A stretch of 62,016 nt of DNA, filler included, from Choristocarpus tenellus KU-1152 (GCA_964200185.2; 11 parts of 11 records of this genome joined end to end with filler, not necessarily neighbours in it); one strand, 5' to 3'. Counted from the whole stretch's first letter, positions 44 through 50,971 are shown. Program-made: numbers and translations. The notes: a model not told the origin generated them from the sequence alone.

Positions 44-104
<61 letters not shown>

Positions 105-407
105 GTAGTGAGAAGTTGCATGACGCATCCTTGGGTTCGTTGATGGCTCGGGAGAAGATGTAAGAGTAGTATTAATAGGGAGTTGTTTTGAGGGTTGCTT
201 AGTGTTGTGGGTAGAAGGGGCATGTCATAGGGAATACAGAAGCCTGCGCTGAATTTTTACCTAGCTTTCTGGATATTGTTTTGAGAATGGGTGTAGGGAA
301 GGGGAGTGTAGGCAAGGTGCAGGAGAGAACAGGGGCCGGGGCCGGGGCTGGGGTCGGGGGGGGGGGGGGGGGGCCCCAAAGTAATAATTTTTACTNNNNN
401 NNNNNGG

Positions 408-467
<60 letters not shown>

Positions 468-3400
468 GCACACACAGTAATACTATTTACTTTGTACATC
501 AGGAAAAAAATGTACCTACTGAATGCAGTGAAATTGTGCTCTTCTTTGAATGCCCTTGTCTTATTTGTTTTATTTGTTGTGTGATGTTAGTGCATGTCCG
601 TGGAAAATAGTTTGGTTGGAAAGAGGCGTGTGTGTGTGTCAATGGTTAATAATATGGAAAAGGATATGAAATAAATACATAGGATAGGGTTCACGTGCTG
701 GCTGAAAACGATTTTTTTAGGAACACTTTGAGTTGGAGATAAGAGGACTGGAAAGGGGTGGTGCGAGTCAATTGCAACCTGGCATGGTTGTACCTTGCTT
801 CACACATCAGAATTCAATTTTGAAGAAGGGATGACTTTAGCGGTTTTTGTTTTTGAAGATTTTCAGGGCATTGCACAAGAGTAGTCATTTCTGAATCGTA
901 ACAAGTCGTACCATATGGAAAATATGTAATTTCGCTCTTTGTATGTGGTGTAATGTAACTGAGCTGTTTTTTTTACATGTTGTTACTTCTCAAGTATCTT
1001 CTCCATACAAACATACTACGGTGGAGTATGTGATATGTCTATCCATCATATCCATCAGGTACGAGCTTTTCTCCTATCCCCGTCCTCACCACACTGTTTC
1101 CTTTCAGGTACATGCGTACTGTGTTATTTAGAACCTAGCCTTAGACTTGATGTTGCACTTGGAGTAGAAGCCATGATGTTGTTGTGAGCATGTGGAGGTA
1201 CAAGTTTATGGAAGTTCCATAGAGTGCTCTGTATTATGTCCTTTCTAGTGTGAGATAGACTTTGGAGGTCTGCTTGGGGAAAGTGAAACATTTCTATGTG
1301 GAAACACAGGTACGCACTAAACATTAGTGTGAAGAGGTACATGAGGTGGATGGGTCAACCTTGAGTGGGTAAACTGAGAATGCGTTACAAAGAGGGTGGA
1401 TTTACTAACTGTAAGTCACTCCATGCATATTTCTTGCCCTTTCTGGGACAGGGAACCTCCGGAGGTTGGTCAAGAGACATGCCCATGCACAGAGGTTTCA
1501 ATTGAGAACTGGCACTGTCACCACCTACGATGAATATATTGCCAGAAATAAATTCAAATCACTGAAAATGAGATGCCTACTACCTAACCCCCACCCGTCC
1601 TGTGGGTGCAAAGGATCCATTGCTACCAGTTGTTTGTGCCCTTTTAGAGCCATTTTTTGAACCTCCCTTGCTACTGCTATTGCTGCCCCCAAGGCGTCGA
1701 CTGTATGCTGAGCTCAAATGCGAATCCACCTTGGACTGGATGGAAGTAGGTGCTTTGAATGCGGGGAAGCTCCCCACCACCTCATAGCTCCACCTGTTGT
1801 GTTAAGAAATGGAAGTTGCTTGTCAGATATCGTGTACAAGTGTCTCGTGTAAGTACTGGATATCGGATGACCCATGAAGGACACTTTGTACTGTCATATG
1901 CTGTGTGTGTGGGGGTGGGCTATGTGGCCTACGAGTTAAGCAGATCCTGAGTCAACGCTTACACATTCCAATACAGGGGTGTATCCTGATAGATCAACCT
2001 GCCATAAATGTTACGTTTTGGAAGGTAAAATATTTCAAGGCGCTTGGTGTGAACTAGGTTTCTGCACCTATGTGGCTGGGGGTTATAACTAGAGCTAACT
2101 CTGTCAAGCAAGGGTCTAAATGGATCGACATTTGTACTCAGATTAGGGTTATAGGGTATCATGGCCACACAATTGCGAAATCATATCTACTATTGCAAGA
2201 AGTTTATAATTGATTGTGGATGGACGGGTTGTTGATTAGAGACCTTCAGCTTGCCTGTACAAGAGAAGACTACCTAGCCACTACCTAAAGCAATGGGTTG
2301 GGTATGCAATGGGAGTCATATACAAGCAGTCTAATGTTGACTTGTGAAATGTTTGCCATTGCTAATTTGGGGGAAACTACTAGGGTGATACACCCCAACA
2401 GAAAAATATGGTCTTCAGTCACGTTTGTTGAGAATCGATCATTTCAAGCCTAGGCGTCTAGAGGCACTTTCTTCCTATTGAATATTTCCATCAAATAAAC
2501 AAAATGCAGCCTCTTAACACTCCATCACCTGATGTCATCGGTCTCTACAATGAGGACCCCCCTCTGCCCCTGAGCATAGTGTGTAGGTGCGTATGTTACG
2601 GTGATGGGTGTCCCTTCTGTCCCATAGGGGGTGAGCACGCCATCGCAGGGGTCTACATGAAGGCTGAGGGCGCTGTCAGCAGTGAAGTGTGCCTGTTTTT
2701 TGTTTGAAAAAAGTAAAATTAAAATAGAGCGATTTCAAGCCCACAATGGTATAAATAGTATTAATATCGTTGTCATTGCATTTTGTCTTTGCTTTCAGAA
2801 ATCAAGGGGGTTGTAGCATCAGGTACTGGAAAATTGGTCGACTGTGCTACTTCCCATCTCCATCTGCCGATGGTGGAACTACATGGTGGTAAGAAAGGAA
2901 TTGTTGATGGTGTGGGGAGATTTGGTACGCATAATTGGTCCAACCTTGGTATCTGTGGCAATATGTGGTGTGTTAGGCATCCCCTAGAATTGTGAATTTG
3001 GACTGGCACAATTGTTTTCCTGATTTTTTAATATAGGGTTAGGGTTAGGGTTAGGGCAATAACGACTACATATGCTTCTTTTTATTAGATAGACGTTCCG
3101 TCCCGAATTTCGACAACCATCTTTGTGCCCACCATCCAACCATGTTGTATTGCCGGTATCTTTCTGCAATGTTTATCTGTGACGTGTTTAGCAAATACTA
3201 CAGTAACATTTCTATCTTCACACGATGGTTACCACACCACACTTTGCTAGGCGTAACCCTTATGTTGTCAGTACCTATATGAAATAATCCTTACAAATAG
3301 ATTAGTATAGATACAAGTGTCAAAACAGCTACTATTCATAAGGAGAACAAGACCAACAACAAGTATGTATCGGTTATAGCCGTGATGATGAGCCCTTGGA

Positions 3401-5763
3401 TGTGAACACGTGTTTTTATGTCCAATAAACAGAGATCTTTCATCGAAAAGGCACTGATTTCTGGCTAGGGGTTGACCATGGGAGCTACTGCTCTGTTGTT
3501 AACGGTGCTCGCAGCAGTGCCCTGTTTAACATGGGAAACCTTCCAAAAAAGTGAAAGACTGCAGCTACTGACACTGGCAAGCAGGAGGGGCTAATGTTGG
3601 CCCAGAAATGTGAAATTCTGAGGTTTCTGACTGTGGCTTAGTCCTTCATACATGCAACCCCAATGCCCAAAGCTCCTGGAGAACTTGATTAACGACATAG
3701 GTATACTAAAAATAAGAGTAACAACTCATACCGTATGGAAGGAAAATTTCATGTTGCATCAAATAGAATAAGCATATTTATCGATGCTCAGAAAAAATAT
3801 TGAAGTGTCTTTGAAGTATTTAAGTGACAAAACCTTTTCTGGTAACAATCCACTAAACTGGTATTTCATTAGGCCTTACATCATGACTGCGTGCCTCTCA
3901 ATGCATCAATCGGCCTGTGAGTTAATCAGGAGCGCCAAATTTGGTTGACACACAGATGACTTAAAAGTGGATCATTATTGCAGTATAGTTTCTAATTTTT
4001 CCAATTGTAATGTTATGCCACCAACAAGACTAGCTGATCACTTCTGACAATTTTTTCCTGCTACAATTCTCTATGATTGGAATCTTGCATGGCCTTGTAT
4101 GAAGGCCCTCCTCTGACTTTTTTCATACAGCTTCTTCACCTTCTTGTATTCATCGCTAAGCTTTTGACCTGTGCTACCGCCTCATAATTTATAGAGTAAT
4201 ATTCTTCCCATGGGCTAAAGTTTTGACAAATCAACTTCAACTAGAAACAACTCACTTGGTACTTCCACATTCTTCCAGTTAAAACTGCATGTAGTACCTT
4301 TGGCTTCAAAACTCAAGTTACTGTTCCATGAGGCAACTCAAACCACCGAGGAACAACTACAGGATGCGAAATAGCATGCTACAAAATTGTTCAACCTCCT
4401 CCAAGGGGAAAATATTCCACAGAATGGAAATTGCGTCATATGTTTGCTGAATGAGACATACCTTGAGTACTTCATTTCTTCTTTTCAAATTGAGTTGATA
4501 ACATGAGATAATGAAGCAAGCATCTGTGCCATATACCTTTGCCTGCAGGGTTGGGCTTCTAGTATATGTGTACAACGAGTTAATGGACTAATCGTTTAAT
4601 CCGTCATTTCATCTTGGGAATGGCACCATCAATCTTGTAAGAAAAGAGATCCAGAATTTTTGGCCAAGGCTTCTATTGTGGATATAAGGGTGGGTAGCAT
4701 CAACGGAAGCAGCGCCAAACCATAGGGATAGCTATAGTTCTGCAGAGTGAAAGATATTGCTCGCCATGTTTGGTATTAGGTATTTAGAGCTTGCTCAATT
4801 GAGATAAGTAACCTTACACATGTTGGACGTTGGGTACTTTATTGGAGATTATAGCTTTCTAGCGTATTGTAACTGGATACCCTTCCATATGGAAGGAATA
4901 TTTCAAGTTGACTGATGTGATTCTGGCTCGCTCAGTACAATGATATACTGGCAGTGCCACACCGAACAATTGTGGGCGTATTGAGGTTGAGGGGCAAAGT
5001 GTGAAGACAGAGATCTTACTTGGGATGATCATGGTATGAGGATCGGGCACAATATGTGATTGATCAATTGGTCAACATCTTAGGCGATCCATGCCTTTCT
5101 TGACAAGCCCGAAATATGCCATAAAATGATGCACTTTGAATACCTTGAATCTTTCATGATTTCTACATTATGTTCAGTCTGAAATGTATTGAAATGTATT
5201 GGAATGTATTGAAATATATTGAAATGTAATGCGAAAAAAAAAAAATGACGAAAATAGGATGATCATCTACAGATTTTTTTTCTATTTGAAAACAGTTTAA
5301 CAAAAAGTAATTAACACATAAAATGCAACCAGACAAAAAATTCTGATGGTGTATGATACTGGTGGCTTGTGGACAAGAAGTTCCTGTATGTGCAATCAAC
5401 GGTCATTTGTTCCAACCAATAATACAATAAGGTAATACAGGCATGAAACTTCAAGGGTGGAATAGAACTTTGAGCAATCAGTGGCAATATATTTTTGAAC
5501 GTTTGCTGGAGTAGGGACCTGCTGAAAGTGCACTATAGGAATTAAAGAAAGTACTGACAATACTGTGGAGAAGGGTAATGAATTCTATTCACATGCAGCT
5601 GAGGATTGTGGAAGAGAATAGGCTTAAGATCAATCACCTGACCGGTCACACCATTGAACAATAATAGATTGAAAGTATCATTTTTTACACAAATGATATT
5701 AGTATTACAAACTGTTGTAAGTTTCCAAGGGACAGGGGATAGGGGATAGGGGGTAGGGGGTAG

Positions 5764-5863
5764 NNNNNNNNNNNNNNNNNNNNNNNNNNNNNNNNNNNNN
5801 NNNNNNNTTAATTAATTAANNNNNNNNNNNNNNNNNNNNNNNNNNNNNNNNNNNNNNNNNNNN
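5764..5863. other. Synthetic scaffold linker (N44-TTAATTAATTAA-N44); also at 14264-14363, 17710-17809, 21431-21530, 26205-26304, 33200-33299, 42061-42160, 46812-46911, 50972-51071, 55419-55518
   Basis: An identical 100-nt spacer with a six-frame-stop 12-mer occurs ten times. Short 10-N gaps also lie at 396-405 and 7532-7541. Confidence 0.98.
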
Positions 5864-6063
5864 AAATAGTAGTGGGGTGGGGGGGGAAGGGAGGGGGGGG
5901 GGGGGGGGGGGGGGCTACACAAGGGTATCCATTTGGGCCTTGACCAGAAAAAGTGCACTTAAATCATCCATCCGACACATGCTATCAAATCACACAAAAA
6001 TTGCGAAATGGAAAAATGAACCCCAACTGGACAGCTGCCACCCCTCCCCAGATACTTTGAGCC
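5864..6063. mobile_element. MITE family B copy, truncated by scaffold end
   Basis: Internal sequence matches 11505-11730, 12915-13097 and 28545-28721; ends CCCCAGATACTTTGAGCC. Confidence 0.85.
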
Positions 6064-6895
6064 CATGGTCTAAAGTACAGTCCTACTAATACGCATCCCC
6101 CTTTTTATGGTTCTTGCTTGTCCTGTTCTGCCACTTTTGGCGCACACACACGCCAAACACCAAGCTTTCAATCAAAGCTGCGAGCCGAATCTGGGCGGGC
6201 GTTGGCTGCAATGATCATGGTTCTGGGGATATGACTCTTGTGCTGCACAGTAGGGGATCCTGGAAGGTAGTTATCATCCTCATCCGGCAATACCCTAACC
6301 CTTTCCCCATCAGCCATCACGTAGAACCAGGTTTCACCCGCATGGATCGTGTTCGCCATGGAGGTGTACACACCACATTTCCAGTCCTATTGATCACAAA
6401 CAAAGTCCATTCTCCATACCTTTTGCCAAGATTTAAGCTTGGGTTTGATCCAGCGGCGATTCGGCATGGCCCCCATATCATCCAACCACCTGTTTATGGT
6501 GCTTACGCTATAATTCAGTCCCTTGGCGACCATCTTCCTTGTCACCCGACGCACTGTGGATGACTAATTATCAGAGTTGATACTATGTATTGCGGCCATC
6601 TTGGTCGGTGTGAGCTCCGAAGGCCGCCCACTACGTGCCGCCATCCCTAGGTCAAGCGCGTGGCCACGGGTGAGCTGATTGGCAATGTCCTCCCAGAGCC
6701 CTTCCTCCCAGAGCCCTTGCATGTAATGCTTGGACACTACAAACTCCGCTGCGAGGGCCGGCCCAATGTATCGCAGCAGTTTATGCGCACTAGGGACCAT
6801 CGCAAGGGATTGCCGCACTGCAAGCGCAACCCTGGTATTCAGGGACACTTGGACACCCTTCCTGCGTGGGGGGGTTGACGGGGGGGTTGCCATGA
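6064..6895 (-). pseudogene. Tc1/mariner-superfamily transposase pseudogene (plant/oomycete mariner-like)
   Basis: Minus-strand pieces read RSGRPSELTP (HTH linker), IHAGETWFY (cf. VHxDEKWFY), VQHKSHIPRTMIIAANARP (cf. KSKRxxxKVMFLxAVARP) and GVWRV...RTSKNHKKG. It has stops and frameshifts and is cut by MITE-B at 6063. Confidence 0.8.
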
Positions 6896-7486
6896 TGACG
6901 TTCTGACCCTCAACGTGCCCAGTTCTGACCTCAAAATCACCCCAAAAGACCCTACTTTGACGGCTCGAAGCTCCTCGAGTTTGTAGCTGATGATCCTCAA
7001 CCCCCACCTTTTCTAAAAGCTGAGATTGTCAACCCGATTTCATCTGTGGGGTTATCGTCCGATTCGGCGCCGTTCTCGCTCGGCGAGCCCAGATGTTTCG
7101 TGGCACAAACCTTTGGCACAGAGGTAGTACTAAATTGTAATCTTTGCATTTCAAACATTTTTGCACCACCCTCCCGAGCACCATAACATCATGGGGTCAC
7201 GCCTGGTTGGCAAAAATATTGCCTGGTCCCAAAGTTTGAAAAGGAAATTCATCCTCAAGTTGAAACTTCTTGGATAAAGTAGTAGGAGAAGATGTTTCTG
7301 GCGGCCATGACCTTGTATTTGCACTTAACGAGAGTAAAATTCTAATGTTTTTTTAGTTGCACAGACATTATTACTTCCAAATCAATAAGGTTTTTCGAAC
7401 CGGAAGAAATGGGGCATTTTTCAATTTTGTGAAAAAACAGTATCACTACTTCAAAACAGAATATGTTATCGATACAATGTATATGT

Positions 7487-7845
7487 ATAATGGGGCCTGG
7501 TTCTGTGTGATGGGGGGTGATGAGAACCACCNNNNNNNNNNGGAAGTGAAAGATGAGACTGAGGCATGCTGGGTGTATGTTGATAACCTCAGAATGCCAT
7601 ATGGATCAATCTTCAATGTGATTGGTTGTGACCAGCCAGAACAGAAAACACAATCTCGGGCTTTGTTGGTTTGAATCCACCGTTCATGTCGGAGTTACTG
7701 CATGCCAGTCGTGTGTCTGACCCACAACACATCACTTGCCCTGGCCTCAATTGCAAAAGGTGATGCGCACAAATGTATGTGACCGCGCGTATTATCCTCA
7801 TCAATGTCTGGAGATCCCAAAAAAGGTGACCTGTGCCTGACACAC
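7487..7845 (+). mobile_element. Fragment of the tRNA-headed SINE (5' body)
   Basis: Reverse-complement match to 46141-46485; ORFs 7613-7843(-) and 46164-46370(+) translate almost identically. Confidence 0.8.
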
Positions 7846-9751
7846 TATCATCTCCATAATTATCACCAGAAAATCAAATCCAAAAATGTCCCCTTTGTGC
7901 TGTCTGCAATAAAGTTGAAATATGGATCAACAGATTCCAAAATATATTCAAAAATTTGAAAAAGTCATTAGACAGTATCACAGTGAAAGCCAACCCGATA
8001 CATCTTGACCTGTGCAGCCCCTAGTTGAAAAAAACAGACTAGTCTACAACAAATGCATCTTTCTCGTTTTCGAAAATCTGGGCAATATCGTCTGATGGGC
8101 AATTAGAAGATACACCACAATCCAACTCTAAAAATAGCCTATGAGATGACGTCTGCCTTCCAAAGAAAACAAGCAGATTTTTCTCCAAAACACAACATCA
8201 ATGTAACACCATCTCCTTGACTTAACTAAAGCTTTACATTGGTTGGGCAAATAATAAAAAGGGGCAATATAATAGTAATAATAAACCAGAAAGACCAAAC
8301 AAAAAAGAGTCCCACTAAAAAAGCAACAAAATGATATTTTGTACAACTTGAATTACCTGGACATGATCTTGGAGCTCTGGACAGGTGAGTTTCACGATGA
8401 TTTTAAACAACAGTAACACAATAGATGTTGACATGAGCACAATAATAACATTTTTGACGTAACTTGTGAAAATCAACATCAGAATGAATGTTTTATTGAA
8501 GAATGACTAGAAAGAGTGAAGTAGTAGCTTCCTGAATGGCCACAACTGTAGCTGTACAGCATGATGGATTCCCATTGCACAGACACTGCCATTTTCTATG
8601 CAAAACCATATCTTGCCTATTGTTTTTTCAGTTGTATCTGGGTTAAGTGCTGTCAAACGGAATTCCTTTCCACCTGTACGTAGAGCAGTGCCTTTAACAA
8701 GCCTACACAATGTGAAGCACCAAGATCATCCCTCCTATGCCTCATCCTTGGCAGCTAGGTTGGGTTGCCAAGCTGATGTATCAGTACCATCAGTCGCCTG
8801 CTCCATTCTTCCACCTTCATGGCTTTGAGCTTCTCAAGGGCACATATATCCATCTCAATCCTGAGAGGGCTGGAAAATTGTCCTGTGTTATGCAGCCCTG
8901 TGAATGACTTACATTTCAAGGAACATCTCATGCCATACGGTGCAGGATAGGGTGAGAACAGTGTGAACAAAAGGTGAAGAAGTTTGGAGAAGGTACTCAA
9001 ATAAAGTCCTAATACCTACGAAATTTGCATCCTCTGGAACGCAGAGGGCACCGTTGACAAGTTGCATTATGATTGACACAGAAAGGACGGCATAATATAC
9101 ACCTTTCATCCAAACTATACTAACAGGTCGGCCGGCAGGTTGACATTCTCAACGGCTCGGTGGGCAGAAAAGGGTTTTTTACTGGGCCTTAACCGCTAGG
9201 AACTTCTTTCAGTAAATGTGGAAATTCGTATAAAAATACTGCATCCACCTATGTATGATGTCGTCCACCCCACCAATCCACACACCCACATCAACACTAG
9301 ACATCAAGGAGACGAACCAATCATAGATCTCCCACCTGTAGGTCTCAGGACTATGAGGCGACAATGGTGCAGCAGTGCTTATAATTTTCTATTGATACAT
9401 CAATGGTGTGAAAAGAGGTACATAAAATTCCGATATATATATAAATATTTCCGACATCTCGATAAGTGGTCAAGGATGTCAGATAAGGCAAAAGCTTGCT
9501 AGTGGGCAGTCCAAGGGTCAAAGTTTGGTCAACTGAGATATTTGATTCCATATTGCAAACGCCATAGACTGTACACCAACCTGTACTAACCTATCTCTTA
9601 CTATGCCACAAAAATACTGGACCAAGAATGACGTGGAAATGTCAAGGCAAGTCTAGGAAAAAATTGAGGGTGGAGGTGGAGTGATGAGTGATGGGATCGT
9701 TGAACCCAAAACATGATAAGCAAGGCCCAAATGAATGGAGGCAGTTCGATC

Positions 9752-10125
9752 TGTTGTAGTGCAAGAGTTCGTTACAGTAGTATACCTAGAAGTTAATATT
9801 AGAACCATTTATCTACTCTGCCTCTGACTAAGGGTTATAATATATACTAATTCCCAGACTAAAGTGAAGACAACAGCAACAACAAAAATAATAATAATTT
9901 GGAGCACTAATAACAAAACAATAAACCTCTTGGGGATGGAGAACCCATATCATATGGACTAAACATTTCTCATTCTGTTTTTCATTATTTAAAACCCTCT
10001 CCCCCTCTAAATCTTCTCTCCCATCTTCATCCTACCGCTGCAAGGAGTCGAGAGGTGGCCGGGTTGAGATTTGAACTCACGATCTCTAAATGATCGAATA
10101 TTGACATAACACAATCCCCCTGCTG
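9752..10125 (-). mobile_element. Possible LTR (TG...CA) preceded by a polypurine tract and containing a tRNA-like 3' half
   Basis: The minus strand reads AGCAGGGGGAT then TGT at 10113 and ends CACTACAACA at 9752. It contains GATCGTGAGTTCAAATCTCAACCCGGCCA (10056-10084). Confidence 0.35.
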
Positions 10126-10694
10126 AAGAAGATCGACATATCAGAGAATGACATAGTTCTGGTAAGAAAAGATTTCGTCATAGTAGCAAGCCAATCTGCT
10201 TTGGGGGGGGGCAACCAATGTCCCCTTGTCATCCACAAAAGACCATATTTTTTAAAGAGAACTCTGGTAAGTCATCGTGGATGATAGCCTTTTGGCTCGT
10301 TTGAGTGTCTGACTGAATCTTCACCTTGACAGAACATGAGCGGCTAAGCTACTATGTAAAGATTGAGAACATAAGTGTCAGGGGGTAGGGGATAGGTTAC
10401 ATGGATATTCAACCTGATACACAGGATATTCTTGTATTACTATTGACAAGCATACTATTCCTACATACCTTGCCAAAGAATTTACAAAAGCTTTGTGAAA
10501 ATTGAAAGAGATTCCTCCTTCTTGAGCTTCTTCTCCAGTACCGTGGGCAAGGAAGTATGGGGTGACAGACTAGGTGTGGAAGGAACGAACTACGTACGGT
10601 ATAATATAATTTAGCCTGTACTATTAGCAGTCGTATTCTATACACCGTCATAATGAGCCATGTGCACCTCACTGATTTTTCTTGTTGTTGATTA

Positions 10695-11460
10695 GCTTTA
10701 TAATATATATCATTTTGGCCTTTGACACTTTGCAGATGTGTCAGGGGAAAAAACAATGAAAGGCCAACTGAATATCAGAACAACCCCCGAAATAGTAACA
10801 GTTGTCATAAACGTGAAAGACATTTTTCTATCGTCAATTAACTGTTTTACTACCAGCTATGCTACACCACTCACCTCCTATGCTTCCAACCTAGCTTAGT
10901 CCTATACCCCCAGGCGAGGAGCTAGGGAAGCATCCAAAGAAGCTGACAGGCCCCTCCTTACCCATGAGTGAGAATATCTTAGAGGGTACGAGTTTTGCCC
11001 TGTTTGTCCATTTGGAGCTTGACTTCCCGTGGGTTCTTTTATGACACTTTCCTACTCCAAAATGTTTAGGAGTAGGTAAAATGTATACGTCATGAAAAGG
11101 TGTGTCCGGAACAAGGACATTGACACTCCTTAACAAAAACGTTATGAAAATGTGTGTCCGGAACATGGATACAGACACTTTCTAACCAACACGACAGCCA
11201 AAATTACATCAAAACCGAAACATTGGATTTTGACCACCAAATGGACGCGGCCCTACCTTCTAAGATACTTTGGCTCCTATCTCCCGGGCGTCTCCAGTAT
11301 AAAACGCATGACATGTCTTGATAGAGTTACTGGTGTTGTGACGGACACTATCTGTCGTAAACGGGATTTGACAGCCCTTTTCCTGCTGTAGCCTCCTCTC
11401 GCCACTCTCCCCCCTACCGCGTGCATAGTCAACTCACCCAGAAAATGTTCTGCTCGCTGA
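10695..11460 (+). mobile_element. SINE 3' body copy interrupted by MITE-A
   Basis: Homologous to 11740-12160 and to the reverse complement of 45735-46140. Confidence 0.75.
10966..11276 (-). mobile_element. MITE family A (Sola-like ends), full length, with an internal ~50-bp duplication
   Basis: TIRs are GAGTGAGAATATCTTAGAGGGTA and TACCTTCTAAGATACTTTGGCTC. Flanks are CCAT/CTAT, whereas the empty paralogous site near 11990 has a single CCAT. Confidence 0.9.
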
Positions 11461-11504
11461 CCATGGCGCCCAAACCTTTCTACCGCAAATTTGTTGAGGT
11501 TATA

Positions 11505-11730
11505 GGCTCAAAGTATCTGGGAGGTGGGGGGGTCTACATAAGGGTGTCTATTCGGGCCCTGACCAGGAGAAGTGCACTTACATTATCCATCCGACACATG
11601 CAACCAAATAACTGAGCCGCTTCCTGTCTGCATGGAGTCACCATCGCTCTCAGCATCTGTATTAAAAATTGCGACAAGGAAAATTGAACCCCGAATGGAC
11701 AGCCACCACCCCCCCCAGGTACTTTGACCC
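11505..11730. mobile_element. MITE family B, full length with a ~50-bp internal insertion
   Basis: TIRs GGCTCAAAGTATCTGG ... CCAGGTACTTTGACCC. Confidence 0.85.
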
Positions 11731-11739
11731 ATATCTACA

Positions 11740-12160
11740 TATTTGTATTATACCCTCTGATATTTTGCAGATGTGCCAGGGGAAAAACCAATGAAAACTA
11801 TTCACATGTCAGAACAATCCCTAAAAAGGAGCACTTGTCGTAAAATGTGAAAGCCATTGATCTATTTACTATTTTACTACCGGCTATGCTGTACCACTGC
11901 TTCCCTGAGCCTCCAACCTAGCTTAGTCCTGCACACCACAGGGTGAGGACCTAGGGAAGCATCCCAAGAATCTAACAAGTCCCTTCTTGCCCATCTCCCT
12001 GGTGTCTCCATGTTAAAATACATGACACGTTGAGATAGGGCTACTTCCGTTGTGACTGAGACTATCTGGGGTAGACGGGATTTGACCACCTCTTTTCTGT
12101 TGTAGCCTCCTGTCCCTCTCCCCCCTACTATGTGCGTAGCTAGTTCATCCAGAAAACTTT
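11740..12160 (+). mobile_element. SINE 3' body copy
   Basis: Homologous to 10695-11460 and to the reverse complement of 45735-46140; compare ORFs 11877-12089(-) and 45743-46006(+). Confidence 0.75.
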
Positions 12161-12914
12161 TATATCTACATATTATAACACAATGCCGCCCAGTATGAAT
12201 TCGACCTACATTTGATCTTTCCCTAGACCATTATCTACCAACTTTTAATGCTATGGTCACTATGAAAACCACAAACACGATGTTTGTTTATCCAGATTTT
12301 TTTTTGCGAGTTTTGTGAGGGTAATAAAAACTCTGATGGCCTGTGACCCTAACTACGCTTATGGAGAAGGAAATGAGATAAAAGACGAGGCTCCACTGGT
12401 CGAGCAGAATTGTATGTGATAAATTCATCTTGATATTTCAACTGTTGTATTGCACCTGCTATCACTGACGCTCTATTAACACTAGTTTTGACCCTTCTAA
12501 TATGAACGCAAGCAATCGACTTGGCGTCTATTCTGATTTCTCTGCATTCCATACAGGAGGTCTTCTTCAGAGTCTCGTTTGTGCAACTTCTGATTTCCCC
12601 CCAAAACGCAGCAATATGTGGTCATGAACTATGTATAAGATAGTGATACCGTATACATACGACGGGCGAATATTTTGATATCTGTGAGAACCATCTTCCA
12701 AAGAAGGTATACCTTGAAGGTAACCTATTTTTAAGAATCGGATATTCATATGACATTTGTTTTTGCACGTTGAAGTAAACTCTGCTTGAAGTAAATACTG
12801 GGTGATTCGAGGGGACCTTGCAAACCCCCCTCATTCACCTTACCACTTGTTCACTCTTCTCCTGAGTGATCTTCAGAAGGATTGCTCTCCCTCTTGTCTT
12901 GTCTCTCTCCTTTT

Positions 12915-13097
12915 AGCTCAAAGTATCTGGGGGGGGGGGGCGGCTGTCCATTTTGGGGTCATTTTTTTCATGTCGCGATTTTTGGGTGATTTGGTTGAAT
13001 ATGTCGGATGGATAATGTAAGTGCACTTTTCATGGTTTTGACCCAAATGGACACCCTGGTGTAGACACCCCACCCCCCCCTCCAGATACTTTGGGTC
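12915..13097. mobile_element. MITE family B, full length
   Basis: TIRs AGCTCAAAGTATCTGG ... CCAGATACTTTGGGTC; flanks TTTT/TTTC. Confidence 0.9.
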
Positions 13098-14193
13098 TTT
13101 CCTTGCCTCCTGTGGGTCTTTCGGTCCTCTTCAGTACGAAGAATCTGTCGGTTTGTTTCCATCTGTTTCACACTTCGACTATTATTATTTTGTTTGCAGT
13201 TTTTTGGAATAGAGGAATGTGTACGAATAAGTATGTCCCTTTCGCAGCGAATACCAGAACTATCTCACACATCCGTGACGTCCACTCGTCTCCGTCAGGG
13301 TACTCATGGCACTATTTTGGGGTGGTGCATGGAGAGAGTGTAATCCAGAGTCCTTAGTTATATCCTGGATGAGATGAACATCTAGGTGGAATTCGAAGTG
13401 AACCTGTCCAGTGAATGAATACCACAACTGTGCATAACAGTTGTGGACATGAAAAAGAGTTTTAATATGCAAGAAGAGTCAAATCCATCGAGACCTAGGC
13501 AAGTTTGGACCCCTTTGCAATCTAAGCCAGATCTCTTACCCTTTGCGATACGCTTCATCCCATTGCTTTATGTGCACTATAGTGTGTTAAATAGTTCTTG
13601 TCCCCCCTTTCGACACACGAAGCGACACCACAAGTAAGCAAAGTCTCTTCCTGCAATTATAGAAAGTGGCGTCTTATTGGCCTTGTTGGGGTCCTTAAAA
13701 TGTGATCCTGCCTACCTCTCAATTGGTTTGACTCAAACGTGCATTTGGCCACAAAGTGCCAGGCAACACATCATATACAAACACATCACCCTTGTCTTAG
13801 TTGTGCGTGTACAAGGTAGGCCCATGGGAAACCATCCACGATGTAATTAATTCCAGACTACGGCCTTGCCCCTCCCACGGACCTATAAACTACAATTTCA
13901 AGCTGTAAGCCTCACAAATTTGATTCCACATGAGTGCACACTTGTGAACATGGTCAAAACGTAAGAGAGAAATGTAGTGTTCAATTGTAATAATGATCAC
14001 TGAGGGACACCATCTTGATATAAATTCGGTGAAGTGAGCCCAAATGGGCAGGGTCATGTCACTCCACTTGTAGGTCAGGTCACATGTGAGTCAAAGCAAA
14101 GAAGAGGTGCCCAGTGTTGCCTTTGAAGAGAGCTGACAAATATTTGCAAATTTTGGCTTTGTTTCCAAATGCGTATTGAAAGTTTTCTGAATT

Positions 14194-14263
14194 GGGTCAA
14201 AGTATCTGGGGGGGGGGGGTGGTTTCGGAGGGGGCGTCCGTTTTGGACCCGATAAGTTGCTCA
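14194..14263. mobile_element. MITE-B-type terminus at scaffold end; similar stubs at 26305-26326, 33300-33355, 41975-42060, ~42230-42269
   Basis: GGGTCAAAGTATCTGG followed by poly-G. Confidence 0.7.
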
Positions 14264-17200
14264 NNNNNNNNNNNNNNNNNNNNNNNNNNNNNNNNNNNNN
14301 NNNNNNNTTAATTAATTAANNNNNNNNNNNNNNNNNNNNNNNNNNNNNNNNNNNNNNNNNNNNACCACAGGCACCTGCTTTTGCTTTCATATACATACGT
14401 GGGGGTAGCTTGTATGCCCCCCCCCCCCCTGTCCACCGCCTTCGCTGCGTAAGACCCAGTCCCCCTCCACTCCTAGTCCTACTTCCACACCCTAAAATTT
14501 TAACCACCTTGGGAGGGCGGTTGATCTTTTGTAACTGCCTTTGATCACAGCAACGTGCAATGGCATGCGGGAGTTACGACTTGATTTGTTTTGTTTTTTT
14601 ACAATCTAGAATCGTGATTGTTGTTTCTTCCCCGAGTATACCACTGTACCCTCCATTGGGGGTGAGAAAAGGAATGGAGGGTCTTCCAGATCACACTCAC
14701 TTGGTCGCCTTCTCTGATATATAGTGCAGAACCAGGAGTTTTAAAGGGTCACACTGAACATAACAATGTAGTAGTACATCATGCACATATTTGATTTTGT
14801 TTTATCTCCCTTCCCACTGGATGGATGGATGCCTTTGGGATTTTTTTTTAATTCTCAACCTATCTATTTACACCATGCCTAATTTGTTGTATAGCAATAA
14901 AATAATAGTACAAAATAAACTTTTTTTTTATTCTTAAGCGGTTGGCGTGATGCGAATCCTGGACGTCTCGTACAAAAATGCCTCTGCAGGTGGTGGAGGA
15001 CCATGCCCCGTCTGCCCGCTGGAGGGTGGAAACCCTCATCTCCATGTTGCACCTGGCAGGGGCACACTGTGATAGAAGTGTACCGGCTGCAACTGTGGCA
15101 TACACGAGCCAAGCACCTCATCTGCATGCCTACGCAGTGCACAAAACCTTTAGACTTCTGCAGGCAAGCCAATTTATGTGTGTCTGGGGGTGGGGGGTGG
15201 GTGGAAGGATGGTAGTTGCAGGTGTTTTTATGGTTATCATGAGGTCAAGGATAGATAGGATGATGGAGTAGAGTGGTGGTTACACTTAGCATTCGATAGG
15301 GTTAGGGTTTCACTTAGCTATGCAGTGAATTCAACTTGTATATCTGGGTATGGTGAAAAATTTGGGGACTTTATGTAAAGGTTTGGTGATGGCAGCGAGT
15401 GGGAATAAGTTGCCTACTGTATCATGTCGTTTCTGATGGTACCTACCACGGCTGACAAGGCCTTTGTATGAACCTTTTTTTTTTAATGTTGTGTATGTAC
15501 ATACTTTTTGTGTTGGTGGTAAGTGTTTGGGTCAGGGATTGTTCGGAGATGATGGATTGGTTGAGATTGTTGTATTTTGGCACTTTTTGAGTTCTAAAGT
15601 TGAACCGTGTTTTGAAAGGTAGATGAAGCAGGGGTTGATAGCATGGCACGGATTGGTGTTTGATGGTAATTGACCAGGCGGTATTCGTAGTTGTTGATGC
15701 TGCAATTATTGTGCCTTTTTGTGTTCGTGGCCTGTGGGATGGACCCTCCACCCTAGAAAAAAATAAATAGAACATGAGCAGAAATACTTCAGTATGGCAC
15801 AATTCGCTAGACGCCTCTCCCCTCTCTACCTCAATCTTCCTGACTATAGATGTTAGGTGATTGGAAACAAAGAGCGTGCCCATATGTGTAGTTGAATATT
15901 CCAAGAGTATATATGTGAAGAGGGAAAGACAATGCCCCCCTGATATGGAGTATAGAAATAGACATCGCCTTTCCAAGAGGTTGATTCTTTTTTTTATTGA
16001 AGTGCTTGGTTGGATTATGCATGCAATGCAGAAACCAATTTTTTAACAGGAAAACCTTTTAGTGTTTTTATGTATTTTGATACTCTAGGTACTATATATA
16101 TTTATTATGAAGTATTGTTTGTATAATGTATATTATTTACAAGGAAGATGAGGTCAATCAGTGCCATTTTTGTGTGAATAAACCCCCTTCACCCCCCACT
16201 CCCAAAACTGTCTGTTACCACCTTCCCAAGCACAGAGAGACTTGACCCAATCTGGCCTCACCTTAGCTGGCGTTTGGTTTGTAGGGGAGTATGGAGACCT
16301 CCTTATCAAGCCATGTCCCCCCCCCGGACCAGACACAGAGTTAGAGGCAGAGGAGAATGCAGATGGAAATAACGCTGATTGGGGGGTCATCGATGGGGAA
16401 GGAGATGGGCACAAGGGAGAGGATGTTGGGGGGGAGAGAACTTCGTGGTTGGATGAAACCCCAGTGATGAAGAAGGATGGGACCAGTAATGGAGGGGGGG
16501 GGGGGAGGGGGAAGGGTACGCGGCGTTGACTGCGAAAGAGATTGTTAGTCTGCTGGAGAAGATTTTGAAGGTCAGAGGGGATTTGAGGGGGGGGGGGAGT
16601 AAGTGTGTTGTGTTTGGGTGATGGAGGAGTGGGGGAGGAGAGAAGTAAGAGAGGAGGGACTGCAGGAGATGATGATCCGTAAGCTGTATATTCAGAAGCG
16701 ACTTAAGTATTGGAGTGTGTTAGTATTGGTGTTATTATTATTTGATCCTGTAGTTGGTAGTCTGAAGTGTGAATACGTGCTGTCTGCGTTGTTAGTGATG
16801 CAGTTGGAGTATTAGTTTGTAGTAGTGTTCACATTTTAGCACAATTGGCTCATGTTGTGGATGTCCTGCTTGAGACAAGGCTTTATGGTATCACAAAGAG
16901 CACAAGCTGTTTGGTGTGGCAGGTTTGAGCTGGTCGTACTCTTGTGCGCTATTGTTCAGGCGTTTACAGCGATCGCTGTGGAGGAGGTGAAAGGAGGGGT
17001 TTTGATAGGAACGCCTGAGTAGGGTGGGACACGTAGGCTCCATGCATATCTATAATGTAGTAGAGTACTGTAATTGTGGCAATGAGGCTAGAATGTAGTA
17101 ATACTGATAGAAAAAAAGAGGATTGAGAAAAATACACTTTTGAGGATAGTGAATGGGTCGATAATATTTTGTTTATAGAAGCAGTTGCTCTAGCAATAGA

Positions 17201-17644
17201 CAAAAAATATATTAATTTGAAAAATATATATTCATTGAAAACAACTGAAACGTCATGATGTGAAGAAGAGTTAAAGAGTTAAGTATTTATTATATGTGTG
17301 TTTTGTGAATGGATCATCGAGATGCTCTGATGTTACTAAGTATAGTTTTCGTCCACTATGCAATTAATTTGTGCTATTTTGTATAATTGTAGTAGTAAAT
17401 TGTTCTTGTTCATCACTGTTCATTTTCTGTTTATGAAAATGGGGCAATAGTGATAAGTGTGTGTGTGTGTATGTATGTGTATGTATATATATATATATGT
17501 TTTTTAATGAAAGAGTATAACGTTTGTCTTTGTCATGATGCGTGCTTACATTGGTGTCAAGGACATTCATAGTTCTTAACCTATTAAGTCGAGGTGTCAG
17601 GTCAGGGTTGTTGTGAGTATGTTTGTGCTCAGCCTTGTCTCTCT

Positions 17645-17681
<37 letters not shown>

Positions 17682-18816
17682 TTCTTTTTTTTATTTTTTT
17701 TTATTTTTTNNNNNNNNNNNNNNNNNNNNNNNNNNNNNNNNNNNNNNNNNNNNTTAATTAATTAANNNNNNNNNNNNNNNNNNNNNNNNNNNNNNNNNNN
17801 NNNNNNNNNCTGGACACTGAGGGAAAGTTCCAAACATAATAATTTTATTGGTCGAGTTTCGAAGTAGTATTATCTTATTCATAATATGTTTATTGGTCGA
17901 AGTTCCAAATAGTATTATTATTATTATTCGACATGCCATATCTCTGTTAGGAACTCATTCTATATTCTGATTATATTTTCAATAGTAGATAAGTATGAAG
18001 AAAAGTGTATAAATATATTCGGAATTCGGAAATATTTTGGTGCTGCAGAATTCTCACACATATATCAATCATATGAGATTTGCTCGAATTGACTGAGGTA
18101 TATATTTTATATGTTGTCATGGTCTTTTACATTTTGCATAATATGGGTGAGGAAAAGAGCCAAGCTTGTACAGTCACTGTAAAAATTCTGTTGTCGTAGA
18201 TGTGTGAATATCTCTCTAATTTACATATCCATGAGATGAATCACTTACATAGAGGGATATAATAATATATTTTATACATCCTACACTATTTATATTATAT
18301 TATGCCCTTTGGCATTTTGCAAATGTGCCTGGGTAAACTATTAGACTAATAAAACTATTTATGAGTAGTGCATTTATAAATGACGTATTCTATGATTGAC
18401 CTTTTAAAGTGCGTGGATGTCTGTCTTCCTTTTGGACGTATGGAACCCAACAATTTGTTTTATACTTCATTGTGGGTCTCAGGACTTCCTCGAGGGTACT
18501 ACACTATGCATGACGCTTTTCGACCTTGTCCTCTTGCATAGTAGGGGGAACGGTTCAAGTGATTTTTTTTTATGAAATCGTGAATGTGGATGACAAAGAA
18601 TGTTTATGCTAAATATACATGAACTTATACTACAATTTTATTGAGTACTGATGATATGTATATATTTCATGTGATACACTGTATGTTCCAGATTTATTTT
18701 CTGTTTGAGAATCCTGGATTGGTTGTTGCAAGGACCAAAACTAACTCATTTGCTGTGTCACACCCCACCACCCGTCAACACGTTGAAGGCTATCCTGCTG
18801 TTTCTGTGTGTTGACC

Positions 18817-46565: not shown

Positions 46566-46923
46566 ATGTTTATTTGGGTCTGTTATTATACCGTTATTGC
46601 ATATGCATATACCGATATACCGATTGAGGTTGTGTTCTGGGAGCTTAGGTTCAACTGTGTGGAGGATATTCTGAGTGATATATTTCCGTGTCTTCCTGCA
46701 ATGTCTCCCCTCTCCCCCCCTCCCCCCCCCCCCCCTCCCCCCCCCTTTTTTTTTTTTTTTTTAGTTTCTTTTTTACGAAAACTTCTTCTATCTCTTCGGT
46801 CATTTTTTTTTNNNNNNNNNNNNNNNNNNNNNNNNNNNNNNNNNNNNNNNNNNNNTTAATTAATTAANNNNNNNNNNNNNNNNNNNNNNNNNNNNNNNNN
46901 NNNNNNNNNNNGGCAAAACCTAC

Positions 46924-47957
46924 CTCTTTGTTCGCGGTGTAGATCACAATTGTGGACTTGTGAGGCATGAACTGCCCGTATGTATCAGCCCAGTAGTCTA
47001 TCCAGGACATCACCAGGTCTCACTTCGGAGCCATGTCCTTGACTTTGTTCGTGCCGTTCCTGTTCCAGTAGCGCACGTATGTATATAAATGGATGAAAGA
47101 TATGTTGGAGGTGGATACAAGGGACGGGGGATGGAATCCTAGAGGGATCCTATGCCAGCAGCGGATCTCTAATTCTGTAGATATTTACGCGTGGTAACTG
47201 CTGCAACAGCGCGGGGACGGCCGAGTGAGATGATATTGTTGAAGCATAAATAAACATATCGCACGTGTATATACACACATAGGTAACACCTAACTCCACG
47301 CTGGAGGAATCTCTAACTTTGTACATCAGACATCTAGGCGTGGTAACTGCAAAGTGAATGTGGCGAGTACGGTCGGATTACATTGTTCTGAGATAGGACT
47401 ACTGTTCAATCATCAAGCAGGGGGAAATATATACCGGGTACAAATAACACTGTGTACATACATCAAACCCACCTCTCCATGCCGGTGGATGCTCTTGTGT
47501 TAGGTGTGCCTTTGCAAGCGTCGATGACATGATTAGATATTCCGAACGATGTCTTGAAAAACTGCGTACAGGCGGGAATGCCGACCGCGAGCATAGATCC
47601 TCCTCCAGGTCCCAACTTAATCACAGGTACACGGTCGCCAACGAAGTGCTTGCAATCGTGGCGGTTCTCACATACCCGGATGTTGTCCGTCTCTCTGGCC
47701 AACGTGCGTGCAAGGAAGGACTCACTATCTGCTGCAAACTTGTTCACACAGGCTAAGCGCTTGCAGCAGTCACCCTGTTTGTTGACCAGGATGGGTTGAG
47801 CCCATCCTCAGCGAAGTTTGGCGCCGGTCGCTGAAGAGTCATTGGTAGAAATCTCCAGCGCATCCAGCGCATCATTGTTGGCGGGCTGGTGAGGGGGCAA
47901 CACAGGGGGCGACACAGGCGACAAAAGCCACCCCCTTGCTGTAGAAGCAACTGTCAT
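46924..47957 (-). pseudogene. Sola2-like DNA transposase, 5' part (exons 47957-47473, 47059-46924), with two TGA stops
   Basis: The spliced translation has CCKRLACVNKF, ACTQFFKTSFGIS and SWIDYWADTYGQFMPH...K, the N-terminal motif series I recognise from Sola2 transposases. Junctions are phase-compatible GT-AG. The catalytic domain lies beyond the scaffold end. Confidence 0.65.
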
Positions 47958-48051
47958 GGTGTTTTCGGGCAACAGGCGGTCTTGGGCAGTGAGAAGGTGT
48001 AGGAGTGATTAGATTCGAAGGTGGGCGTGTGAACGATGTTTGAGCTCAATG

Positions 48052-49010
48052 CGATCCGTGGGATCACCCTGAGATCCATCATCCTGAAAATCCGTGCATT
48101 ACGGTTTTCGGAAGTTGTAAATCCGATTATATCTGTACATACATTTTTTTTAAATACAACGCACGCACTTAATTGATCTTGTACGTTTCCAATGTTCCGA
48201 AACCAACCTTTTTTTAGCTCCGGCCGATCCGTGGGACCACCCCGAGATCCATGATCCGGAAAATCCGTGCATTACGGTTTTCGGAAGTTAAAATTCCGAT
48301 TATATCCATACTTACAATTTTTGAAAATACAAAGCATATACTTCATTGATCTTGTACGTTTCCAATGTTCAGAAACCAAAAGGTAAAAAAAAAACTGGCA
48401 CCCTCCAATTGTTTTAGGTACAAAATCTTAAATTGTTGGACATTTGCATTCTTAAAAATACTAGAGACGACAAAAAGCGGTTCTTGAGTTTTGGTGATCC
48501 CTTGAACACCGAAAACACGTGCATTAGGAATTTTAGAAATAGTAAATCCAGTAATAACCGTTCTTACAATTTTTGAAAATACAAAGCACGCACTTTATGG
48601 GTCTCACACGTTTCAAATTTTCAGAAACTAAAAGGTCACTTTCAACTGGTACCTTATAATTTATTTAAATACTAAAGCCGCTTTTTGGCGACTTTAGTAT
48701 TCTTAAAAATAATAGAGACGACAAAAAGCGGATCTAGAGTCTTAAAGATCCGATCGGATCGCCTAAACCCTTGAAGACCCAAAACACGTGCGTTAGGGTT
48801 TTTACTAAATATTAATAATATTCTAATCTTTACATCAACAAATACAAATAAAACCACATCCTTCATTGATCCAATACGTTTGAAACGTATGAAACGAAAA
48901 GGTCACATAAAACTGTTCTCTTTTCAATATGAAATCGTATGCTGTCCAATAATCGTATTTTTTATAACACAATTATCAACGGAAAGACAAATCTGAGTTT
49001 TTAGGACCGA
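48052..49010. repeat. Degenerate tandem array of about 4 units (periods ~173, ~252, ~269 bp) between divergent genes
   Basis: CGATCCGTGGGA at 48052 and 48225; CGTGC(A/G)TTA four times; AGAGACGACAAAAAGCGG at ~48462 and ~48714. Confidence 0.9.
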
Positions 49011-49133
49011 CCGACCAGATGAAATAAAGCAGCACCTCCCAGCCCTTAGTCCTTATTTCAATTCCTTCCCCTCCGTACATACCATGCGTACCTGTTATTT
49101 ATCGATCCCCGTCACACCCTCCCTATCTTCGCC

Positions 49134-50779
49134 ATGTCCAGCATTCGCTGAACAACAACCCACCTGCCCGCCGATGGCGCTGCCCACGGATCAAGAACGT
49201 GGTACAGCATGTCCTCGCTCCTACAACAGTACTACCTCGGCACGTGCCAGATGAAACTCGGCAACATCACATGCACGGAGATGGTGCGTCCACTGAGCGA
49301 GCGTGGCCTTGCGCGCGTCAGCAAGTCTATCCACGAGAAAGGCTGGCTGGAGCAGTTTACTCCGTTTGTCGTAATCCAGCGAGACTGCTTAGGCAACGGG
49401 GACCAGCTCATCGCTGAAACTGCGCTTGCCATTCAAGGACGAACACTGGACGGAAACAATAGAATAACGGTGCTGAAGAGAGAATTTGACCCCGAACACG
49501 CTTTCATGATGCGGGTCTACATGGAGTTCAATCAATCAGAAGAGAGGCTAATTGCCAACGGTGGGTGATGGAGTGTTGTCGTTGTTCCATGATCGCCTGA
49601 TGACTCTTCTGATCTACCAAGTTGTTGCCGAGTATCCTTTGTTTGGTTCATCATCAGTCAGCCCATTGATGATCTTTTCGTTTTTGATCTTTTATCCCTC
49701 GTGGTCTTTCTGCCAACAGCAACATGTTGCTCACTACTGCCTGCCGTTTGTGTCCCGCGACAGCTTCCCAACTACCCCTTGTCCCATTCGCCCACTGCAC
49801 CGCCACGCTTATAGCATTGAGCCAAAGTATCTTAGAGGGTACAGCCGTGTCCATATGGGGGTCAAAGTCCAATGTTGCAATTTTGATGTAATTTTGGCTA
49901 TTGTGTGTGTTAGGAAGTGTTAATGTCGATGTTCTGGACACACCTTTTAATAACATACACATTTAACCCACTCCGAAACATTTGGCAAAGGAAAATACAA
50001 TAAAACGTCCACGTGAAGTCAAGCCCCAAATGGACAAACAGGGCAAAACTCGTACCCTCTAAGATACTTTCACTCATTAAACGAGGTGACCGAGAGTGTG
50101 GTTGAGCGCATGCTGTACGATAAGGTATATTTTCCGCACGAGCTCGAAGAAGCTATCAAGCGGCAGACAAAGAAAAAAGAAGTGTCACTAGCAGAGAACC
50201 GCAAAATGTACAAAAAGGTGAGGGAGTTGACAACGTTGGTGGGATGGTGGCGCTCTACTCCTCCTCTAGTTGGGTTATAGCTGTTGTGAAATCTCTCTGT
50301 GTCCTCCTATTCAACCTAAGTCAAGATAGTTATCCCGCGTTTAGGAACCCTGTCAACCAACTTTTTGATTTTCGAGTGACCATGTAGTATGTATATGTGG
50401 TTAACCACAGACAAACAATACAAAGTGTCCTTGTTTGTTTTATCGGCGGTGTTGCCTGGAATCCCCCCCTCCCCCCACTCATACATACCCTGTTGACATG
50501 GTAATACCGATGCCTCATCCTGGATGGCTGGGTGCATAATATTTTTCATTTTCTGCCCATCGCGAAGGTGGGCGTTCCTCCCCTGGCGAAAACAACTCTA
50601 CGAAACTGGAAGTTAGGCGTAAAGTCCCGACCAGAGTCCTTCGAGGTACTGAAGGAAGTGTGTGAGAACTCATCACCACAGGTCGACCGCAACGCAGTCA
50701 CACTGAACTATCTGAGTCGCAAGGAGTTTGCTGGCTTCACTTCTCTCAAGCAGGGGCTATGCATCCATTTGCTTGCTAG
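49134..50779 (+). pseudogene. ParB/Sulfiredoxin-domain plus HTH protein (exons 49134-49560, 49815-50217 minus MITE, 50568-50779), disrupted and 3'-truncated
   Basis: VRPLSERGLARVSKSIHEKGWLEQFTPFVV...LDGNNRITVL matches ParB box I/II (R..l..SI...G...P..V; DGxxR). It continues IANALNEVTESVVER and the HTH-like VSLAENRKMYKKVGVPPLAKTTLRNWK. TGA at codon 6; MITE in exon 2. Confidence 0.7.
49819..50075 (+). mobile_element. MITE family A inserted in exon 2 of the ParB-like gene
   Basis: Full TIRs; flanks (C)ATT/ATT; removing the element restores the reading frame. Confidence 0.92.
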
Positions 50780-50904
50780 GCAAGTCAAACTGCCACTGTG
50801 TTTTATCGTGTAGACAGCAGTAAACGCAATGTGTGCAGGTCGCAGCACATTGCACAGGAACGTGCAATAAGTGTCTCCTACGATGAAGAATGTAGTCGGC
50901 CATT

Positions 50905-50971
50905 GAGCCAAAGTATCTTAGAGGGTAGAGCCGCGTCCATTTGGGGATCAAAATACAATGTTGTGATTTTG
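50905..50971 (+). mobile_element. MITE family A stub at scaffold end; also 51072-51297(-) and 55349-55418(+)
   Basis: GAGCCAAAGTATCTTAGAGGGTAGAGCCG terminus. Confidence 0.88.

Follow-up and report, generated by a model that had tools for sequence, protein, structure and literature searches.

The closest described system is Sola1-1_Ec32, a 21.5-kb Ectocarpus transposon in which a gene on the strand opposite to the transposase encodes a 1104-aa protein that is ParB-like and carries an N4C/N6A methyltransferase; the family was classed as Sola1 by best hit (PMC12477816). A second is PAG3, an accessory gene of Plavaka elements in the red alga Bostrychia moritziana; this gene is ParB-like, lies beside tandem inverted-repeat arrays and has been proposed to bind and modify its own element (10.1101/2025.02.11.637652). 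In addition, the methylases of phage ParB-terminase loci and the ParB-HTH-methylase fusions of chlorophytes and chytrids combine a ParB-type module with an N6A/N4C methyltransferase (PMC4738411).

The window (the whole stretch of DNA analysed, 62,016 nucleotides) contains a 4,060-bp piece (46912..50971) that is very probably a degenerate copy of a giant Sola1-type cut-and-paste DNA transposon of brown algae, in the lineage of Sola1-1_Ec32, with two outward-transcribed genes and an accessory protein proposed to bind its own element. The piece covers the central ~4 kb of the element; the ends of the element and both catalytic domains fall outside it, and for this copy they would have to be supplied from its relatives. 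As in Sola1-1_Ec32, a homologous transposase is accompanied by a ParB-like gene on the opposite strand, and the relatives of the window copy also resemble Sola1-1_Ec32 in their giant size (18.35 kb in the relative L009), long TIRs, similar ends and a methyltransferase-like C-terminal domain. In contrast, the window copy belongs to another host lineage (closest to Choristocarpus), is dead and has an array in its spacer, and the methyltransferase-like domain of its relatives is without DPPY and FxGxG, whereas a 4mC/6mA-producing domain was predicted for Sola1-1_Ec32 (PMC12477816). PAG3, likened here by description, is similarly a transposon-borne ParB-like accessory gene adjoining arrays, but it accompanies an EnSpm/Plavaka transposase, its ParB domain is fused to a 2OG oxygenase, and the methylase is encoded by a separate gene, PAG2. 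The phage, chlorophyte and chytrid ParB-methylases show the coupling proposed for the relatives of the window copy, but they are described with other methylase clades and have no tie to Sola elements; a phage-type ParB-methylase is a plausible prokaryotic source of the accessory gene. The two-gene Sola design with ParB is not new, as it was published in 2025 for Sola1-1_Ec32 of Ectocarpus (PMC12477816), and the suggestion in the first-pass annotation that the element was undescribed is thus set aside. What is added here is that the gene pair is deep-rooted and constant in its geometry, together with the full-length relative L009 and a hint of a catalytically dead fused methylase. The conservation in relatives of a C-terminal methyltransferase-like domain that nevertheless has neither DPPY nor FxGxG may be new.

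The two genes begin at ATG 47957 (minus strand) and ATG 49134 (plus strand), as had been annotated, and their splice sites were predicted exon by exon from the consensus and by reference to homologues whose exons are collinear. Exon 1 of the transposase gene (47473..47957, minus) encodes a Cys-rich N-terminal region, and its profile matches all of the linked loci described below. Intron 1 (47060..47472, minus) is a predicted GT-AG intron, based on donor and acceptor sequences and on frame continuity with Sola1-1_Ec32, and exon 2 (46924..47059, minus), which has matches in L008 and L005, has a donor next to it at 46923. The DUF7869 catalytic core of this transposase probably lies beyond the edge of the piece, and such a core is seen in L009. 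A homologue search with the transposase exon was blank, as was a Pfam search with all pieces of the window, and a metagenome scan found no relative. Counted by eye, 27 of 71 columns (~38%) of the exon-1 core are identical between the window product and Sola1-1_Ec32_tpase, and a Cys pair before this core and motifs in exon 2 are also common to the two. The same by-eye comparison found no evident likeness to the Sola2-1_Ec32 transposase. The window transposase therefore matches Sola1 and not Sola2, to which it had been likened.

Exon 1 of the ParB-like gene (49134..49560, plus) encodes a ParB/Srx-fold domain and has 79 relatives at E<=0.001, the best named of which belong to two brown algae, Choristocarpus tenellus (77% and 73%) and Sphacelaria rigidula. 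In the alignment of these relatives, DG is invariant and HR is near-invariant. The AF2 model of the exon-1 product has a pLDDT of 89, and 50 of the 50 Foldseek matches listed belong to the ParB/Srx superfamily (ParB, PadC, Noc, KorB, sulfiredoxin, SerK, SbnI and related ParB-like proteins), at TM 0.5-0.6, Z 7-9 and 9-19% identity. On the basis of this model, the predicted ParB/Srx fold is considered established, in agreement with the fold that had been expected. When the ParB profile was searched against PDB sequences, the matches were due to chance only. The fold is the one shared by bacterial ParB, Noc, PadC and KorB CTP clamps and by sulfiredoxin, but the motif of the window family is DGNHR, in contrast to GERRxRA in the bacterial CTP clamps, and ATP-using sulfiredoxin and SerK match the window fold as well as the CTP clamps do, such that CTP clamping is only putative.

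Exon 2 of the ParB-like gene (49815..50217, plus) is split by a MITE in the window and is uninterrupted in L003, L002 and L004. It is followed by exon 3 (50568..50779, plus; 60% identity to L002, 46% to L004, dN/dS 0.34 versus L002), which ends at a GC-AG donor, and by a probable, tentatively placed exon 4 (50839..50904, plus), assigned by acceptor consensus and frame and cut by a second MITE; a homologue search with this probable exon gave no significant match. The GC donor of the intron after exon 3 is apparently used in three divergent copies (window 50780, L002 ~3150 and L004 ~5180). A possible helix-turn-helix spans exons 2-3 as a pattern seen by eye, and a Pfam search with spliced relatives was blank. 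Of the earlier description of a gene encoding ParB plus a helix-turn-helix, the ParB fold holds, but the extent does not: the gene probably continues well past the edge of the piece, where it would encode a methyltransferase-like C-terminal domain.

Both genes of the window copy have nonsense and missense changes. The transposase has in-frame TGA codons in exon 1 (47810-47808, minus) and exon 2 (47022-47020, minus), and the ParB-like gene has one in exon 1 (49149-49151, plus), which confirms that both are disabled. The stops had also been described as similar; however, the Choristocarpus copy L003 has CGA at the site of the first transposase stop, whereas the Choristocarpus copy has TCA at that of the ParB stop, and they are therefore judged to be different mutations. 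In addition, the conserved DGNHR motif of ParB exon 1 has become DGNNR (His>Asn; 49449-49463, plus), a change that escaped the first-pass annotation, as did two MITE insertions in the same gene. The first MITE (49819..50075) lies inside ParB exon 2 and is 257 bp long, with GAG...CTC ends, a TIR of ~25 bp or more, an ATT 3-bp target duplication and a folding z of -3.5; the corresponding site is empty in L003. This repeat was rejected as a Sola end on account of its 3-bp TSD and the empty site. The left end of a second copy (50905..50971), cut by the edge of the piece, is 89% identical to the first and again follows ATT. The two insertions, separated by ~1.1 kb, each interrupt a coding exon and each follow CATT. 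The MITE is unrelated to its host Sola element, and no member of its family was found in the fetched relative loci. By its TSD, it is tentatively Harbinger2/Pangu-like: the 3-bp duplication fits the ANT/AWT type, and AWT TSD families exist in Ectocarpus, but the GAG..CTC ends differ from those of Ectocarpus Harbinger2. With both genes mutated and one of them twice interrupted, the window copy is, as read from its sequence, a dead fragment.

The DNA around 11 ParB homologues was examined for the transposase exon, and seven of these loci (L002, L003, L005, L007, L008, L009 and L019) have a head-to-head transposase. In these and the window (n=8), 0.87-1.5 kb separate the domain matches, both genes point outward from a shared spacer, and the head-to-head pair is kept down to ~27% transposase identity. 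No transposase was found upstream of ParB in L001 (10 kb), L023 (2.9 kb) or L004 (1.2 kb), and L006 is too short to judge. Such loci would be expected if the ParB-like gene were an independent element or a mobile cassette with frequent insertions beside Sola transposases, and not a stable part of the transposon, and red-algal ParB accessory genes do move among Plavaka, Mutator and Zisupton elements (10.1101/2025.02.11.637652). However, orientation and spacing are fixed in all eight loci down to 27% identity, the trees of the two genes are congruent, and in L009 one TIR pair encloses both genes, so that a cassette is very unlikely. In L001, a near-perfect tandem duplication of 971 bp lies before the ParB exon-1 homologue (L001:8507-9777).

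Across the eight loci, the pairwise identities of one gene correlate with those of the other (Mantel rho 0.76, 14 of 5040 permutations), and their eight-taxon trees agree in unrooted topology; near-duplicates (L020-L022, L024-L026) and unlinked loci were left out of both analyses. Kinship alone yields such a correlation, which is taken here as a sign of joint inheritance. Together with dN/dS values of 0.13-0.42, these sequence comparisons are taken to show that both genes evolved together under purifying selection. Two further arguments that had been offered for the unity of the pair, CpG content and type of stop, were rejected, and unity itself holds on other evidence. The claim that both genes are CpG-rich relative to the window is void, as the other DNA in the window is unrelated and the CpG o/e values are only 0.8 and 1.0; the absence of DNMT1/3/5 from brown algae also counts against it.

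L009, joined with L010, contains a complete 18,350-bp element (L009 -93..18256) in which both genes lie between long TIRs. The TIR arms are 99% identical over 423 bp and extend to ~900 bp at 88%, and the ends are AACAG/CTGTT, versus AACCG/CGGTT in Sola1-1_Ec32. The transposase of L009 has a DUF7869 core (E=5e-21) with the same catalytic-region motifs as Sola1-1_Ec32. Linkage in seven other loci, congruent trees and the TIR-bounded L009 thus uphold the earlier view that the two genes are one unit, a two-gene DNA transposon of the Sola type with a ParB-like accessory. The expectation of linkage inside shared TIRs with 4-bp TSDs was borne out for linkage (seven loci) and for TIRs (L009), but not for the TSD: the flanks of this single copy are AACC (left) and AATA (right), and the TSD is not seen because the left flank is itself repeat-like and similar to one end of a related repeat. 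Within the long TIRs of L009 there are also two tandem units of 129 bp. Each of the two genes ends in an exon that encodes an acidic tail (L009:1265-2233, minus, and 16681-17394, plus), and the tail of the transposase includes a Trp-rich domain that looks conserved but is not matched in Pfam. In another relative, a long inverted-repeat (MITE-like) element was seen by eye downstream of the accessory gene (L007:9660-10000).

The purifying selection on both genes and the lack of a TIR in the piece would also be consistent with a domesticated host gene pair that is now outside any transposon. Against this, neither gene of the window copy is intact, an acceptor in the ParB gene of the Choristocarpus copy L003 is damaged, there are several divergent copies in Sphacelaria (L004, L005 and L007), and the TIRs of L009 are 99% identical. 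Domestication is therefore exceedingly improbable.

The spacer between the two genes of the window is bidirectional and contains, as had been noted, a ~0.9-kb tandem array, which is AT-rich and consists of four diverged units (about 48040..48930) that are 60-87% alike and spaced by 173, 252 and 268 bp (repeat sizes given as 173-270 bp). It is shared with L003 at ~83% but absent from six of the seven other linked spacers (L002, L005, L007, L008, L009 and L019). The array is thus a local expansion, as it is common only to the window and L003, and it was rejected as a conserved family feature. One sequence within it, the palindrome GATCCG-N-CGGATC (48053..48065, with a single mismatch), has variants at 48226 and 48747 and recurs in the spacers of L003 and L002, the latter having a perfect copy at 59-66% protein identity to the window. 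There are 2-3 copies per spacer versus ~0.02 expected, for a pattern that was chosen after seeing the sequences, and the palindrome is absent from the spacers of L005, L007, L008 and L009. It is the best candidate for a binding site.

These observations bear on the original proposal of an undescribed Sola2 element whose ParB plus helix-turn-helix protein loads on the intergenic array as ParB does on parS. The array is real, lies inside the spacer and is largely shared with Choristocarpus, and its palindrome recurs in L002. However, the transposase resembles Sola1-1_Ec32 and not Sola2-1_Ec32, the array is missing from six linked spacers, and both architecture and hypothesis have already been published, including the idea of binding to a self-borne array, which was put forward for red-algal PAG3 (10.1101/2025.02.11.637652). 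The proposal is refuted as to subgroup and novelty, and as a whole there is little reason to believe it.

Under the preferred reading, a Sola1-type transposon with a ParB-like accessory gene, the full accessory protein can be followed in the relatives. L004 is 44-49% identical to the window over exons 1-3 and shares with L007 and L009 a downstream exon at 36-42% identity, for which four further homologues were found. The profile of this exon aligns to the motif-IV region of eight beta-class methyltransferases (hhalign E=1.3e-4), and that of a later exon aligns to the motif-I region of beta-class N4C/N6A methyltransferases (hhalign E=0.003). Both scores are above those of all 100 column shuffles, and the exons are in the right order. 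The methyltransferase-like exons (L004:7871-8089; L007:7216-7452 and 8370-8555; L009:14367-14597 and 15728-15910) are without the expected motifs, DPPY being absent in 7/7 sequences and FxGxG in 2/2. Searches of these exons against Pfam and PHROGs and a phage tblastn were blank, and a PDB profile search gave M.TaqI only (E=0.65). A model of a 77-residue fragment (pLDDT 62, beta-alpha-beta) matched nothing in Foldseek, and the middle exons gave no alignment to methylases. The profile alignments provide modest support for a methyltransferase assignment in the relatives, and the absence of the two motifs suggests, as moderate evidence, that the domain is a pseudo-enzyme.

Overall, the element would be moved by a DDE-type (DUF7869) transposase and would encode an accessory protein with a ParB/Srx nucleotide-binding domain, a probable helix-turn-helix, an acidic linker and a beta-class methyltransferase-like domain, a fusion that resembles phage ParB-methylase loci. 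This protein would bind sites in its own element, either the spacer palindrome or repeats in the TIRs, and once bound could act on the expression or chromatin of the element. Self-directed DNA binding or regulation of this kind is reasonably likely, and its methylation-independent version is conceivable but somewhat doubtful. Across brown-algal Sola1 elements, it is a tentative possibility that a ParB clamp has been fused to a catalytically dead methyltransferase, long kept by selection, that acts without methylating.

What the Ectocarpus paper remarked on for a single family is thereby widened to a pair of genes that is old, has co-evolved and is found in several brown-algal genomes, and L009 provides a young, full-length relative that is usable for experiments. 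If the tentative reading of a dead methyltransferase is true, then the published prediction of 4mC/6mA writing would need to be revised, and the protein could, for example, read sequence and coat the element that encodes it, thereby controlling expression or escaping H3K79me2-type silencing in a host lineage without DNA methylation. With a pseudo-enzyme of this type, the elements would carry a DNA-binding protein that is prokaryotic in origin, targets its own element and writes no mark, which would bear on how transposons evade silencing in hosts that lack 5mC and PRC2.
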